Source: Perkinsus chesapeaki ATCC PRA-425
Lineage: Eukaryota > Protista > Perkinsozoa
Reading direction: 5' to 3'
Assembly: GCA_013115145.1 (NCBI GenBank)
Contig: JAAPAO010000278.1
Span: forward strand, 1-43,806
DNA length: 43,806 nt
In this document: positions 27,899 through 35,424 of the stretch, in pieces
Position numbering within the stretch: the stretch's first letter is position 1
How the letters are laid out: each line of letters opens with the position of its first letter
Translations under genes and position numbers: made by a program
Notes under the pieces: model-generated
Databases searched by the model: none
What the model saw: only the letters and a program-made list of their open reading frames with translations
What the model was told of the DNA's origin: nothing

Positions 27899-29815
27899 TT
27901 ATCGCCCAGCTGCTGATCCTGGCCAGTGCTTCCTCTGTTGTTGAATATCGACTCTGATAATGAGGTCGCATATTATCTTATCAATTCATCTTTTACTTAC
28001 TGAATTCTGCCATTTGGTGCACCAGGCATCTCCATGCCATTAAGTGCCTTTACTGCGGCTATAGCACTATCCGGATTATCGTACAGTACGAAAGCGTATG
28101 ACCTTAAATGGAGTAACAACAACAACATTAGCAGCAGCAGTATTCTGCTTGTGGATTATTACCCTTTCCATTCATGAAACGGTGGTTTAACATCCAAACG
28201 TAATATCTGTCCGAATGGGGCAAACATTGAGGTTAGCTCTTCAACTGGGACATCATTAGCTAGGCCACCACAATACACTGTTGAGGGGCCTTCACCTAAA
28301 TATTACGGGTATGTCTCAAATGAAGCTTAATTAACGTTCATTCTCCTGTCCTTGCTCTTATTACCTTCCTTTATATTTTCTGCTATTGGTGGGGAATCTT
28401 CCTTCCCCACAAAGTCTTTTATAGTTTGATAAAAGGCTCCTGGAGTGGGACGTTTCATACCGTCTAGCTCCATGTGAATGGTTGTGCTCGCTGCTGATGG
28501 CTGAGATGGGAGATGTCATTAACTTTTACTGCTGCTGCTACTCACATTGTTAGCAAAGAACATAGTAGAGTTTGACAGGGCTCTCATCGCTTCAAGCATT
28601 TTCTCAACCGAATCGAATGAGGCTATACCAACGGGAACATCGTCTTCAGTCTTACTGACCCGTGCTGAACAGAAACTGTATTAAACCTATTACTGAAGAG
28701 GAATGGACATTGAAACTGCTATCTGCCTGTTATTATACTTGGCGTGTCCCAGCCCTATTACTGTAGGGACATTCAAATCCTGCTCTTGAGAAGAAGTTCT
28801 TGAGATGTTCCCAAGTTGTTCCTTCAGGTATATTATGTACCAAACAAGTTGCTTCTTTTAAACCTCTTGGTGCTCCTCCTCCTCCACCATTAGCTTTTCC
28901 TTTACCCTTTCCTTTACCACTTTCATCCCAACGACCACTATAAGGAGATCTACTCCTTTCACGTATATATCGTGATGAAGGAACTGGTGGTGCGATTTCT
29001 CCCCAATCTTCATCATAATTTCCACCTCTACCTTTACCCTTCCCTCCACCACCACTACTGCCTTTACCGAATTTAAGTGGTTTAGGTCTTGCAAATTCAA
29101 CCAATAAAGTATATGGTCCACCACTTGGCCATGGTACTGTGAAATTATTCATATGATTAACTGCATCTTGTGCTGAATCTGGATATTGATAACGTATAAA
29201 TACCAATGCACCACCGTCACCACGGAATAGAACACTTTCTATTGGACCAAATTTACCAAACATATTTCTAACTGCACTTTCATCCATTGACTCTGGTAAA
29301 TGACGTACAAATATTTGAGTCCTTGATAAGTCTAACGTGGATGCGTAATCATCCTGAATAAAATGTCGTTTGCTCCTTTTACCTCATTCATTAACTTTGT
29401 CACTTATTGCTCACTATAACGTTTGTATAAACTCAATGCCTATGGTTGTCACTTATTGCTCATCTATAACGCTTGTATAAACTCAATGCCTATGGTTGTC
29501 GATTATTGCTTACTATAACGTTTGTATAAACTCAATGCCTATGGTTGTCGATTATTGCTTACTATAACGTTTGTATAAACTCAATGCCTATGGTTGTCGA
29601 TTGTTGCTGACTATAACGTTTGTATAAACTCAATGCCTATGTGCTTTTCTCAAGCCTTTATCATTTATTTCCTTATTACTAGCGTTATTTACCCTGCTTA
29701 CTCTTTGCTCATAAGAAGGTCCCCAATTATCCCCTTCATATCCGGAGCCAGCTGACCCCTTTCTCCTATATGAGTTCCACCTCCCTTCATAATCGTTATA
29801 ATCGTCATAGCCCAT
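27899..29815 (-). CDS. Three-RRM RNA-binding protein, paralog A (SR/Gbp2-like, with Gly/Lys/Arg-rich linkers)
   Basis: RRM1 QIFVRHLP..ALVFIRY; RRM2 CLVHNIPEGTTWEHLKNFF; RRM3 exon near 28030-28310; ends QRKHWPGSAAGR*. Confidence 0.85.
29398..29641. repeat. Intronic minisatellite, 5 copies of about 49 bp
   Basis: Consensus tgtcgattattgcttactataacgtttgtataaactcaatgcctatggt; copies start at 29398, 29447, 29497, 29546 and 29595; no spacers. Confidence 0.95.
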
Positions 29816-30813
29816 GTCTGAGACGTTTGCTTGATGAAAGGAAGGTGGTTGGTGGTGGTGCAGGGGACAGTAAGAGGTGTCTCTCTTGAAATCTTGCACA
29901 TCTTGCATTTACTCAACGTTCCTCAACCTCCGTACGTTTTGTCACGCAACCGCTGACAGTATACTGAACCCCCGAAAAAGCTTTGTTCATATCATCTCTG
30001 AGCATTCATTCCTACACTGTAAACTCAACAGGACTGGATGTTAACAAGATATTTCTTCAACGCGTTTTAGGCGCCTGCGGCTGCACGCACATACACAGTT
30101 TGCTAAGTTGTCACGCCAGTGTTGATACGGCCAGTTTGGTACAGGAGCTGATTCCGTTGAATATGAGTGAATAATTACGGATATGGTGCGGATTATAGTC
30201 AGGTTAGTTGTACGTTCATCCACTTATCAACTCACCATTGTGGCTTAGTCACGACGGAAATACTCGATTCTTCACTACGTTCGATATGGGGTTGAGTCTG
30301 CAGCGGTACAACAATATCGCCAAGGGACCTACTGCCATGCTTGGCTTGGCTTGGCTTGGCCTGGTCTAACGACGATGATGTGGTGTGGCACAAAGTGGAG
30401 CGTGACCTGTACCCGTAGTCTCACGGTGAGACTCTCACCCCCCTCAACACTCTTCCACAAGAAGGCGGTTTTGGCGAGAGCTCTCGGGAACTGTCAAATG
30501 GTTCTTACAGCGGCAGCATTCCCTTTGCCCTCTTTAGAGGTCCGCTGATGCACGGGAAGAGCGCACTGAATTGTAGAGATGTAATGAGTGAAGGTCTTCT
30601 CCTCCGAAGGTTACATTAATCGGTTTCGGTTTAATCACTTCATACCGCCAAACTAAAGGATCTTCCTCGGAGGATGGCTTCAAGATTGGACCCAACTTAC
30701 ACCAGACAAACTTGCAGACTAAGACATTATAACATCATTCACACCGAAGGATAAAGTCCCTCCAACTATTGGAGGGCAGACGAGTGGCTATCGAAGGGAT
30801 TAGGCCCAATCCA

Positions 30814-31769
30814 TTAATAATAATAAGCGAAGAGTCGATGGCCCTTGTCGACGTTCTAAAAACAGATATGATTGTAAAAAGTAAACGTCGACATGACAAT
30901 GTCATGATGACATGACATGTCGATTGACAGTAATAAGTTAATCGTACTGTGCAGTTTATCTCCTTGAACTTGAGTCTATTCAGTCCTTGTAGACCATCCC
31001 TGCCTTCCTCTACGATCAAGTAAGTCGCCACAAGTTTGGGGTAATCATCCTTAACCTGACTTAATGACCCTTGCATGTCCCAGAGTTCGGCGACGATGAA
31101 ATTACGCTCTTGAGGAAGCTCTTTAACAGGTCCGTTCCTACTCCTATGCCTCTCCATGAACCTTGAACGACTCTCCAGTAGATATAGCAGAGCTGAGGCT
31201 CAGACGTCTCTACAGGCGCTGTAGGCGAAGGCCTGCCATACAAATGAATTTCATCATGAACCCAGTGGAACACAATACGAAGATAACTTAGGGTGTTTGC
31301 AAATGCCACCGAGCGAAGGCGATAACCATTGTCCCAGGCTACATGTTGGCCTTAACGAGCTCAGCAAAAGCGTTAGGTGTACCATGATCAATTGAGGCCT
31401 TCAATCCTCCAGCGATTCTCTGAGAATGGAAACTTTACTGGACACCTCATCGCTGTGCACGCTACGATCCAGTAGTAGCTCGCAAAGGATTGAAGCCCGC
31501 TACCGAGATTCTTGACTTACTCTTTGCGGATGTGTCGTGTTACCCATCTTCTCGTAAGAGGCGACGAAAAAGTAATCTGGCTTTAATAGGGCGGACATTG
31601 GCGGCTCGTCTATTTTATCGCCCTCTCTAGCTTTCTCAAATGTAAGCTCAGGCATACTCTGCCTTAGTCTATACTTCTGGATGAACTCACGTGGGCTTTT
31701 CATGAACTGTTTTAATGCAGCCTCTGCGCTACAGGTGCAGAGGACTAACGTGACAAGGGACATTCTCAT
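30814..31769 (-). CDS. GNAT-family acetyltransferase with signal peptide (GNAT-B)
   Basis: MRMSLVTLVLCTCSAEA-; LTFEKAREGD; YFFVASY; CYIYWRVVQGSWRGIGVGTDLLKSFLKS|VKDDYPKLVATYLIV..LNRLKFKEI..|NVDKGHRLFAYYY*. Confidence 0.75.
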
Positions 31770-32055
31770 TTTATGATGCTTGGATAATAGAGACAGAACG
31801 AACAACTGCGGATTGATCAAGTGTCCTCCCAGTACAACGGAAGGAGGGCCCCTTTGGAAGGTCAAAACTCGAGAGCTAACATGGGGGTAGCTTTGACAAC
31901 ATTCATTAAATAAAACATCTCCAAGGGGTGGGAAGATTCATAGATAACATGTATAAAAGGGGTTGATAAACTTGATAGCAGGGTTAGGGAGAAGCCTTCG
32001 ACAAGCACGTAAACAGATAAACACCTCCCTGACTAGCTGTTACTGACATATTCTG

Positions 32056-32998
32056 CTAGTATTTGTAGACGTATATTGTAGAACCTTGGCCAACCTAGAA
32101 GATCGCCAATCAACATGAATGCATTGACAGGATACCAACCAGATCTCCGGCATCGTACGCCTTAAACCCGTTCTTCTCGTGGAACTCTTTCTCCCATTCA
32201 TCATCGTTTTTCACAAGGGTGAAAACGGCTTTCATTTTCGGCAAATCTTTTTTAACCTGAAGCATCCGTAATTCTGAGCTGTGAATGATTGAAACTCAAC
32301 CGAGCAGCTCGGCCCGAGCTATGCGAGATTAAAAAAGACAAGTTACTAATATAGCAGACCGCCACTTGGTGCGACTTACACCTTTGAGTGCCGTCTTCAG
32401 AAGCTTCGCGGACACGCGCTGTCTCCATTCCTCGAGGAAGCTAAGGTTGTATATGTAGCATATCATAGCCTCTTTCGCCTTCTTCGAACTGAAATGAACC
32501 CAGAGCTGAGTCTGTCCATGATTTTAATACTGATACTGTTGCTCTCGATAACCTCAATGTTACATCTTTGAGCGAACGAATTCGATGAGTTCCTTATGCT
32601 CCGGGACATTCTTCTCGTCATAAGGAGCAAATATATTTATTATCCCAACTGCTGTCTGACACAGGATAACAGTTAGTCATTATATATCAATCTCAACAAA
32701 TACAACGTCGAAAGTTCGGCTATTCACGGGCCGATGCCAGATCATAACGCCGCCGCGGAAGTTAACCTACTTGCTCTGATTCTTTCGCCGCTACGAATAT
32801 ATGGCCAAGTCCAAAACTGGTGTGTAACCCCGTCGTATTGTCCGATTTCTGGAACCTTCTATAAATGATGGGCTCATCAGGAACGACAGTTTGCCCTCCT
32901 GTAGAAAGCGAAGATTGAACTGGTCCCTTAACGGACAATCTGGCCCATACGCCATAGTTGATGGCGAAGAGGATCTTCACGAGATTAGCCGGAACCAT
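32056..32998 (-). CDS. GNAT-fold protein with signal-like N-terminus (GNAT-A)
   Basis: MVPANLVKILFAINYGVWA-; IIYRRFQKSD; HIFVAAKESEQ|TAVGIINIF; CYIYNLSFLEEWRQRVSAKLLKTALKG|VKKDLPKMKAVFTLVKND..FHEKNGFK..|VGQGSTIYVYKY*. Confidence 0.72.
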
Positions 32999-33318
32999 CG
33001 AGGGATTGAAGGCGCTTTGAAGCAATGAATCGACTCTGCAACATGATATCCCAAGCAGAGTGATAATTCGTTATCTCAATGTTCCCTAGAGTGTCATTCC
33101 GTCCTTCAAGGCGCCCCGGAAATGAAATTTTTGAGCACTTGGCCATTTTACGGCGAGCGAGTCATTCGGTGTCTCGGTTAGAGGAAGTGGACGGCTGTGT
33201 ACCGCGGTCTTGACCGTTCTTGTTAGTTCTAAATGTGACTGGTAAAACGCAACAAATATATTAAAGTCAATCTAATAAGCGATAACCGAAAACGTCACAA
33301 TTATCAAAGCCTTTCAAT

Positions 33319-33367: not shown

Positions 33368-35424
33368 TCAATGAGACTTAGAACCAGGCCAGTGCTTCCT
33401 CTGAACTTGGATCTGGACTCTGAGTGGGGAGCCGTGACAAGAAGCTGACTGACAGGAAGTCTTACGTTATACGACCATTCGGTGCGCCAGCCATCTCCAA
33501 GCCGTCCAATGCATTCACGGCATTTGTTGCACTTTCTGCATCCTCATACAGGACGAACGCATACGAGCTAGAGACGACCGTAAAATACAGTATTGCAGCA
33601 CCCCCTCCCTGGCTCAGCAGCTTACCCTTTCCATTCATAGAACGGCGGCTTTATGTCAAGCCGCAATATTCTGCCAAATGGCGTGAACATTGCACTGAGC
33701 TGTTCTGCGGGCACGTCGATTGGTAGTCCACCACAATACACTGTCGTGCCTCCTTCATCTGACAAAGAATAACGTCCATATCTGAAAGATATGGGTAGGT
33801 GAGCTGGATCATTTGGTGTGGATTAGCGAACCGTCAGGAAGTCAATCCCGCCGTACATCAAGTATGATAGAATACATGACGCAGCGAAGGTATGATCTAG
33901 TATTGAGAAGATACTTGCAGTGTAACGAATTTCAAGCCATTTGTTTGTTGTTGTCGTTGTTGTTGTTGATATTGTGTGACATTGCTACCCTGTTGTTGTT
34001 TGGGGTCATTGGCCGGTGATGGCGGTTGCCCTGTTTCCTTTTGGATATGCTGCTCTATGCCTTTGAAGAATTCACCCGGTGTTGGTCGCTGCATTCCATC
34101 GGGCTCCATGTAGATGACTCGGCTTGCTGCCGTTGATAACTGTGAAAAGCAAATTAAGTTATGATATGGGACTTGTAGTTTATCTTGTTCATCAGGCCAA
34201 AGAGCGTCCGTCAGGCGCTTTGATAATTTCATTACCGAAAATGGTATAAATGAAAAGGAAGAGTGAAAGTAGCAGCCCTTACATTAGTAGCCGAGGGCAT
34301 TGTTGAGTTTGATAATTGCCTCATTGCACTGAGCATATCATCTGTAGTGTAAAAGGATACGACACCAACAGGATAACTATCGGGAGCGCATCCGATTTTT
34401 ACTGAGACAAGGAATCATTTGAATGGCGATGAGGCGTGGGGTAAATTTTACCAGTGGGTGTGTCAAATCCTGCCCGTGAGAAGAAGTTCTTGAGATGTTC
34501 CCAAGTTGTTCCTTCAGGTATATTATGTACCAAACAAGTTGCTTCTTTTAAACCTCTTGGTGCTCCTCCTCCTCCTCCTCCACCATTGGCTTTTCCTTTA
34601 CCCTTTCCTTTACCACTTTCATCCCAACGACCACTATAAGGAGATCTACTCCTTTCACGTACATATCGTGATGAAGGAACTGGTGGTGCAATTTCTCCCC
34701 AATCTTCATCATAATTTCCACCTCTACCTTTACCCTTCCCTCCACCACCACTACTGCCTTTACCGAATTTAAGTGGTTTAGGTCTTGCAAATTCAACCTT
34801 TAAAGTATATGGTCCACCACTTGGCCATGGTACTGTGAAACGATTCATATGATTAACTGCATCTTGTGCTGAATCTGGATATTGATAACGTATAAATACC
34901 AATGCACCACCGTCACCACGGAATAGAACACTTTCTATTGGACCAAATTTACCAAACATATTTCTAACTGCACTTTCATCCATTGACTCTGGTAAATGAC
35001 GTACAAATATTTGGGTCTTTGGTGGGGCAACCGGTGGAACATATCCCTCCTGAAGGACCGACTCTATGACTCATTTACAATGGGAATATATATGTATAGA
35101 TTTGGAAGTGTTATTTTTGTTACTGTGGGATGTTAAATTATTCAGGGGAGAAGGAAAAGGATATTCACGCTCAAGTGTGGAGATTTGTTTTCTTTACTGA
35201 TTAGTGCAAAGTGTGGTATGACATTCACATAGGGCTATTAGATTAACCTCCGAAGAAGTGTGCGAAGGTACGACTGTGTTCTGTATCACTGTTAAATACC
35301 CTACCGGTAATGAGCTTTGATTAAGCACTGTATTTTGCCGCTGACTGTGTGGTGTTTTCACACTGCCTCCGCCTTTGGCACCCTTTCCCTTACCAGATAT
35401 ACCTCCTTTACCACTGAAGCTCAT
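33368..35424 (-). CDS. Three-RRM RNA-binding protein, paralog B
   Basis: Same architecture as paralog A; RRM3 TVYCGGLPIDV..YAFVLYED; ends QRKHWPGSKSH*. Start MSFSGKGG inferred. Confidence 0.85.

Follow-up and report, generated by a model that had tools for sequence, protein, structure and literature searches.

Two divergent tandem genes of Perkinsus chesapeaki encode leader-bearing, GNAT-type proteins that may act in the secretory pathway

Can an acetyltransferase of the GNAT type be sent into the secretory pathway of a protist parasite? This question is raised by two neighbouring genes, here called A and B, on contig JAAPAO010000278.1 of Perkinsus chesapeaki ATCC PRA-425, a protist parasite of clams. 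The whole stretch of DNA analyzed, 43,806 nucleotides (nt) long, is called the window, and positions are those of the window unless another contig or locus is named. To our knowledge, acetyltransferases that depend on acetyl-CoA are rarely found behind a secretion leader. An earlier interpretation of this DNA, made from its letters (hereafter the sequence-only reading), had proposed a tandem pair of GNAT proteins carrying signal peptides. When the pair was analyzed together with a paralog, C, encoded on contig C3243, we arrived at a reading that we place slightly on the probable side: A and B are intact, ancient duplicates whose products combine a leader with a GNAT fold and work either inside the secretory lumen or once they have been released.

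The window has a G+C content of about 47% and is eukaryotic. Reading the region 30700-33100 in three frames and locating the splice sites gave two intact five-exon genes:

30814-31769, minus strand, gene A: exons 31769-31521, 31419-31343, 31232-31106, 31055-30948 and 30855-30814; 603 nt, 200 codons plus stop
32056-32998, minus strand, gene B: exons 32998-32771, 32655-32564, 32488-32380, 32256-32140 and 32094-32056; 585 nt, 194 amino acids

The introns of both genes (eight of eight) are bounded by GT..AG and measure 45-123 nt, and 286 nt separate the stop codon of B from the ATG of A. Paralog C (KAF4654050.1, 189 amino acids) also consists of five exons, and the intron phases, 0/2/0/0, are identical in A, B and C, so that all four intron positions are shared. 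Hence, the spliced, tandem and paralogous genes described by the sequence-only reading were recovered at the same positions on the minus strand, and that they are real paralogs is very probable; the two shared introns that it had counted are indeed shared, but the count was too low. A and B are anciently duplicated, intact genes of P. chesapeaki. An origin of the contig from host (clam) DNA or contamination was ruled out, its proteins being recorded as P. chesapeaki, and a single fused gene was ruled out as well, since the stop codon of B sits in the last exon that is conserved in A, B and C. Additionally, intron 4 is very short in B (45 nt, 32095-32139) and in C (42 nt, L001 1996-2037), with the unusual donor GTTGGT in both; the public model of B uses the same 45-nt intron.

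The model of B agreed residue for residue with KAF4664840.1 / A0A7J6M0V4, a record entitled "hypothetical protein FOL47_004915" and named "N-acetyltransferase domain-containing protein" in UniProt. B is thus known as a GNAT-domain protein, which weakens the earlier description of the locus as an undescribed system; the pair is a divergent variant of leader-bearing GNATs found elsewhere in the genome. No record of A was found with a word-indexed search using the 121-codon open frame that holds its exon 1, and a profile of B and C with exons 3-5 of A as separate rows retrieved B and C only. Because no database protein matched the exon-1 frame or the words of exons 3-5, A is probably absent from public annotation, a record of very different length being still conceivable. 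The neighbour B (FOL47_004915) is annotated, whereas A itself seems to lack a public protein entry. Annotation easily overlooks small genes that, like A, are split into several exons.

The fold was clearest in paralog C. Its sequence passed Acetyltransf_1 (1.3e-12, 48.5 bits), Acetyltransf_7, FR47 and Acetyltransf_10 in Pfam, all over the cut-offs, and its best match by sequence among solved structures was the Ard1 N-terminal acetyltransferase of Sulfolobus (1.5e-7). In NCBIfam only sub-threshold, generic GNAT matches were obtained, the best of them, RimI, lying far below the cut-off of that model. The AlphaFold model of C had a mean predicted local distance difference test score (pLDDT) of 76.8, with residues 1-31 disordered and 33-189 folded, and its top Foldseek matches were AtNAA60, hNaa60 and SsArd1. 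A second structural aligner superposed C on 6tgx_A with a Z of 14.2 and a root mean square deviation of 2.3 Å over 139 residues (model range 35-189), and on Ard1 with a Z of 13.9. On this model the GNAT fold of C is certain, and its subfamily is only suggested, because many other GNATs lie within two Z units. For B, the model in the ESM Atlas had a predicted template modelling score (pTM) of 0.76 and 10 of its 10 listed structural neighbour clusters were GNAT families, at template modelling scores of 0.56-0.66 over about residues 40-194, one of the clusters being N-alpha-acetyltransferase 60. Modelling thus makes a GNAT fold very probable for B, and colinear exon homology points to the same fold, with good probability, for A. 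The GNAT link of the two tandem genes is indirect, because Pfam sees neither of them exon by exon while C passes, but solid. The fold claimed in the sequence-only reading was therefore upheld by the Atlas neighbours for B, by Pfam and the AlphaFold model for C, and by the weaker exon-level statistics for A.

These statistics also define the relationship of A to the other two proteins. Over the full length, identity between B and C is 41% (BLASTP, E 4e-42), while A and B share less than 37% identity in every exon, in agreement with the high divergence noted earlier for the pair. Exon 3 of A matched B with an E-value of 3e-4, and exon 4 of A matched C with an E-value of 5e-4, with an alignment gap at the motif-B Tyr. 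Furthermore, hhalign aligned exon 3 of A to a GNAT profile made without any A sequence (B, C and four bacterial GNATs) with a P-value of 7.3e-6, bringing strand beta4, motif A and helix alpha3 into register, and exon 4 of A aligned to the columns directly after this match. Once again, when a hidden Markov model of B and C was run over the 2363 six-frame stop-to-stop pieces of the window, exon 3 of A was the top non-self match (E 0.0016), exon 4 was second (E 0.15) and the last exon was weak (E 8.9), all of them colinear. Exons 1 and 2 of A keep the order of short motifs of B and C, namely a strand ending in G-D, the FVA strand and a P-x5-E-x-V helix; they were kept out of the profiles because MAFFT misaligned exon 1 of A to the full-length proteins. 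A search of the genome with exon 1 of A found only itself, and among its ESM Atlas neighbours, the best at 0.81, none was meaningful. Because of the exon-level matches, the four identical intron positions and the tandem position, A is, as far as its sequence can tell, a true but very divergent paralog, the most divergent of the three.

The branch appears to be confined to this organism. Among 1.84 billion representative proteins, an exon-1 profile of B and C matched exactly two, B and C themselves. Neither this search nor the profile of B, C and the A exons revealed relatives of the branch outside P. chesapeaki, a metagenome scan for relatives of B returned none, and C alone as a query gave four weak bacterial GNAT matches. 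The family had been called lineage-specific, and its restriction to P. chesapeaki stands, but the exhaustive search behind it covered exon 1 only.

All three proteins depart from the canonical GNAT in several respects. Between beta1 and beta2, where the alpha1-alpha2 arm usually takes about 40 residues, there are only about 17, with a single helix of five residues, as seen in an alignment with bacterial GNATs and in the model of C. In the same model, a 13-residue helix (residues 86-98, pLDDT 85-91) is inserted between strands 69-77 (beta3) and 109-118 (beta4); the insertion is also present in B and, five residues shorter, in A. An extra loop of 20 residues between beta3 and beta4 has been described in hNaa60 (PMC4993997). 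The features of A and B that concern the cofactor motifs are the following:

31136-31153, minus strand, motif A (acetyl-CoA pyrophosphate loop) of A: R-G-I-G-V-G, which fits Q/R-x-x-G-x-G/A
32407-32424, minus strand, degenerate motif A of B: R-Q-R-V-S-A, as compared with C in the BLASTP alignment of B and C
30948-31055, minus strand, exon 4 of A: beta5 and alpha4, starting with VKDD after the shared phase-0 intron and lacking the motif-B Asn and Tyr
32140-32256, minus strand, exon 4 of B: beta5 and alpha4, starting with VKKD, with the motif-B Asn changed to Asp and the Tyr to Phe

Compared with the R-Q-Q-G-V-G of C, motif A of B is short by one residue, no longer has the first Gly and shows Ser where the second would be. 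Motif B, taken as Asn ... Leu-Tyr ... Gly/Lys-Phe on helix alpha4, is canonical in C, and only the closing Lys/Gly-Phe is left in A and B. The motifs quoted in the sequence-only reading (FVA strand, CYIY strand, VK(K/D)D exon start and aromatic last exon) were all present. Its "complete GNAT layout" held for the order of the elements, but failed in the catalytic and cofactor detail, given the lost Gly in motif A of B, the missing motif-B Asn and Tyr of both genes and the very short arm. A and B are thus the two derived copies, which may be weak enzymes or non-catalytic, binding-only derivatives. Their enzymatic activity is doubtful because the cofactor motifs are eroded: activity of A falls somewhat short of an even chance, activity of B seems unlikely, and C would be the likeliest active enzyme of the three.

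In front of the fold, each protein starts with a hydrophobic leader, which in the tandem pair corresponds to:

31719-31769, minus strand, leader of A: first 17 codons, with one Arg, an apolar stretch of 12-13 residues and an A-x-A type site
32942-32998, minus strand, leader of B: first 19 codons, with an apolar stretch broken by one Lys and a V-x-A site at residue 19

In the leader of A the Kyte-Doolittle maximum over nine residues was 2.60, and candidate cleavage sites were found after residues 14, 15 and 17. The three proteins have in common one basic residue, an apolar stretch of 11-16 residues and small residues at -3/-1, with likely cleavage near residues 17 (A), 19 (B) and 18 (C), while the leader sequences themselves cannot be aligned with each other. 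The leaders lie outside the fold, the Atlas GNAT alignments of B starting at residues 21-43 and C being folded from residue 33; a linker of about 20 residues (about 15-25) follows, and then a compact GNAT-fold domain of some 155 residues. The flank after the leader is strongly basic in A, Ser/Thr-rich and basic in B, with about 20 residues free of acidic ones, and acidic in C. A KDEL/HDEL tail was absent from A, B and C, and both A and B have Tyr-rich ends. The hydrophobic leader and the lack of a KDEL-type tail reported earlier for A and B were thus confirmed, and both also apply to C. The N-terminal stretch is likely a signal peptide, and entry into the secretory pathway is predicted as fairly probable.

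Leader-bearing GNATs were also found at other places of the genome. Loci L002-L004 and L006 are built as A, B and C are: they open with a leader, are divided into several small exons, have a phase-0 intron behind helix alpha3 and close with a short, Tyr-rich exon, and an exon-3 profile of A and B reached loci of this type at E-values of 0.015-1.6. Exon 1 of the A/B/C branch found nothing else in the genome, the likeness to the other leader-bearing GNATs is remote, and the alpha1-alpha2 region is shorter in A, B and C than in the L003/L004 type. These three proteins are a small, very divergent branch of a leader-bearing GNAT family that lies in tandem arrays across the genome. At G000:C431:25135-26110 (L006 2636-3610, plus strand) a leader-bearing GNAT gene was observed whose hydrophobic 15-residue start is followed by a K-I-A-Y-R...K-G-D first strand as in B and C, with a canonical motif A (R-G-Q-G-I-G) and the motif B A-I-R-L-Y-K-R-L-G-F; a further motif-B exon lies at C431:23828. 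The GNAT loci L003 1499 (C1566:17998, plus), L004 1330 (C2461:5329, plus) and L002 2425 (C2072:35924, minus) belong to another subfamily, which is larger and has a longer alpha1 region, a phase-0 intron after alpha3 and a Y-L-Y-K-Y-P last exon; L004 and L002 start with a short leader of the M-R-V...C-L-I-N type and L003 with a different hydrophobic one, M-R-A-C-L-F. The genome also contains a gene of the AT-1/SLC33A1 type, detected as PF13000 at G000:C431:7194-7614 (L005 1695-2115) with 66.7 and 35.2 bits, the sole Pfam family on these pieces. Two further GNAT-type genes were seen about 17 kb from it on the same contig.

If the leader works as predicted, it would take the proteins into the endoplasmic reticulum (ER), from where, without a retention tail, they would move on along the secretory pathway or be released. 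Acetyl-CoA would be bound in the lumen, supplied by the AT-1-type transporter encoded in the genome, and an amine on a protein or a small molecule would be acetylated. The sequence-only reading had regarded GNATs as normally cytosolic or nuclear because they need acetyl-CoA. This is contradicted by mammalian ATase1/NAT8B and ATase2/NAT8, GNATs that work within the ER lumen, to which AT-1/SLC33A1 brings the acetyl-CoA they use (PMC8041774, PMC12423556). Delivery into host cells, also suggested there, is pure conjecture and in our estimate highly improbable. The same holds for the broader idea that A, B and C are part of a Perkinsus-specific arsenal of secreted GNATs that reaches the host hemocyte and acetylates host immune or cytoskeletal proteins with host acetyl-CoA or, where the motifs are eroded, binds them. 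If this were true, an arms race with the host would lie behind the rapid divergence of the tandem copies. Among the papers covered by a literature search, judged partly by title and abstract, none dealt with secreted or leader-bearing Perkinsus GNATs, and none gave evidence that Perkinsus proteins pass into the hemocyte cytosol.

Several results weigh against reading A and B as intact, leader-bearing GNATs of the secretory pathway. When the eight exons of at least 25 residues of A and B were searched one by one in Pfam, no GNAT match was obtained, and A gave none up to an E-value of 10. Full-length B stayed below the Pfam cut-offs (16.8 bits vs 27, and 15.8 bits vs 20.7), and a six-frame scan of the 41.7-Mb genome with PF00583 returned 59 exon matches, none of them on this contig. 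The AlphaFold model of B, built on a five-row alignment, was poor (pLDDT 49.9) and unfit for a structure search, and exons 1 and 2 of A, taken singly, had no significant similarity to B or C. No orthologue that would allow purifying selection to be estimated turned up outside this organism, and the database record of B derives from genome annotation only, not from expression. The Lys within its apolar stretch makes the leader of B the weakest of the three; all three leaders passed a crude signal-peptide rule, but this rule is home-made and 9.9% of ATG-started open stretches pass it. Lastly, erosion of the cofactor motifs sets A and B apart from C, which keeps all of them.

This erosion bears on an explanation that overlaps the reading just weighed, namely that the copies are decaying or non-catalytic, one or both genes being unexpressed relics of tandem turnover, or else pseudoenzymes that bind a ligand or a partner. 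The short motif A of B with its lost Gly, its changes from Asn/Tyr to Asp/Phe in motif B and its scores below the Pfam cut-offs would fit such a history, as would the lack of the motif-B Asn and Tyr in A, the absence of A from public annotation and the identity of less than 37% between the two genes in every exon. Nevertheless, the five exons are fully open and the splice sites intact in both genes, and unconstrained drift to this divergence is disfavoured because some 200 stop-free random codons have a chance near 7e-5. The leader character has also been kept while the leader sequences diverged beyond recognition, A retains a canonical motif A, and pseudoenzymes could still be secreted. To this overlapping alternative we give a low probability.

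The two other alternatives concern the meaning of the leader. It could remain uncleaved and serve as an N-terminal anchor, so that the GNAT domain would sit at the ER or Golgi membrane, facing the cytosol. The function would resemble that of Naa60, which works from the cytosol to acetylate membrane proteins at their N-termini, but the anchor would be at the opposite end. Cytosolic acetyl-CoA would then be used and no transporter required; the top structural matches of C are NAA60 enzymes, the beta3-beta4 insertion sits at the site of the extra 20-residue loop of hNaa60 (PMC4993997), and the basic residues after the apolar segment of A favour a cytosolic C-terminal domain by the positive-inside rule. 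However, the flank after the leader of C is acidic, the opposite of what this rule requires, and the apolar stretches, at about 11-16 residues, are rather short to cross a membrane and have a length typical of signal peptides that are cleaved, and each is followed by a cleavage-type site with small residues. Membrane-binding C-terminal helices of the Naa60 type are also lacking, as the proteins end right after the last strand, and we consider an anchor quite improbable. In alveolates with secondary plastids, proteins bound for the plastid carry a signal peptide and, behind it, a transit peptide. The leaders could accordingly be the signal-peptide half of a bipartite sequence directed to the relict Perkinsus plastid, where plastid proteins would be acetylated as by the plastid GNATs of plants. 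The Ser/Thr-rich, basic stretch of about 20 residues without acidic ones after the leader of B, and the basic stretch of A, would suit a transit peptide, but the distance between leader and first strand is only about 15-25 residues, the stretch is acidic in C, and no feature of it is conserved across A, B and C. A family that has grown into many tandem arrays would also hardly be expected in a tiny relict plastid, and we see very little chance of plastid targeting. Entry into the secretory lumen, or release, by way of a cleaved signal peptide is the reading that we retain.

Around the pair, the neighbourhood shows its own history of duplication. A multi-exon gene for an RRM protein occurs twice in direct orientation (27915-29172 and 33381-34868), flanking the two GNAT genes, with a spacing of about 5.5-5.7 kb and 98% identity over 300 nt; the open reading frames 28733-29287 and 34399-34983 (minus strand) are nearly identical. 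The RRM duplication looks recent, whereas A and B, which lie between its copies, are ancient paralogs. Between the first RRM copy and A there is a tandem repeat (29365-29641) with a unit of about 49-50 nt in at least five overlapping copies of 64-99% identity.

We know of one well-studied system of lumenal acetylation, that of AT-1 with ATase1/2, and it is mammalian and membrane-bound. If the retained reading is true, the many fast-diverging, soluble-looking, leader-bearing GNATs of P. chesapeaki would be a second, independent case of acetylation in the secretory pathway, and a candidate effector family would be at hand in a pathogen of shellfish about whose virulence factors little is known. 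The family reaches members too divergent for Pfam, and at least one of them, A, is missing from the protein databases searched and so probably from public annotation. Since cofactor motifs are lost in some members, the family may include pseudoenzymes.

Among known proteins, the best structural matches of C were NAA60/NatF (Arabidopsis 6tgx and 6th0; human 5icv and 5hh0) and Ard1 (Sulfolobus 4lx9 and 5c88), with Z values of 13.6-14.2 over 135-149 residues and a model range of 35-189. The likeness extends to the beta3-beta4 insertion of A, B and C, which is found at the place of the hNaa60 loop, but not to the C-terminus: hNaa60 carries a C-terminal helix that binds the Golgi membrane (PMC4993997), whereas the C-terminal amphipathic helices of NAA60 are absent in A, B and C, which extend no more than a few residues past the last strand and have an N-terminal leader instead. 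The alpha1-alpha2 arm, which in N-terminal acetyltransferases helps to form the peptide gate, is cut to about 17 residues. By sequence, C matched AtNAA60 with an E-value of 0.012, weaker than Ard1, PA1377 and RimI. The likeness to NAA60 and Ard1 is thus one of shape and not of orthology, because identity is 17-26% and dozens of unrelated GNATs lie within 2 Z units. Bacteria also secrete GNAT effectors, such as Eis of Mycobacterium and VipF of Legionella. They embody the same idea, an exported GNAT that uses host acetyl-CoA on host proteins, but they have other secretion routes and no known sequence relation to the proteins described here. The nearest known mode of action is that of ATase1/2 with AT-1, in which a GNAT domain is active within the secretory pathway on imported acetyl-CoA; an AT-1-type gene is present in the Perkinsus genome as well. 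No specific kinship to NAT8 in sequence was seen, though no search aimed at it was made. The ATases, however, are type II membrane proteins encoded by two conserved genes, whereas the Perkinsus proteins have short, cleavable-looking leaders, would be soluble, and belong to a multi-copy, fast-diverging family.

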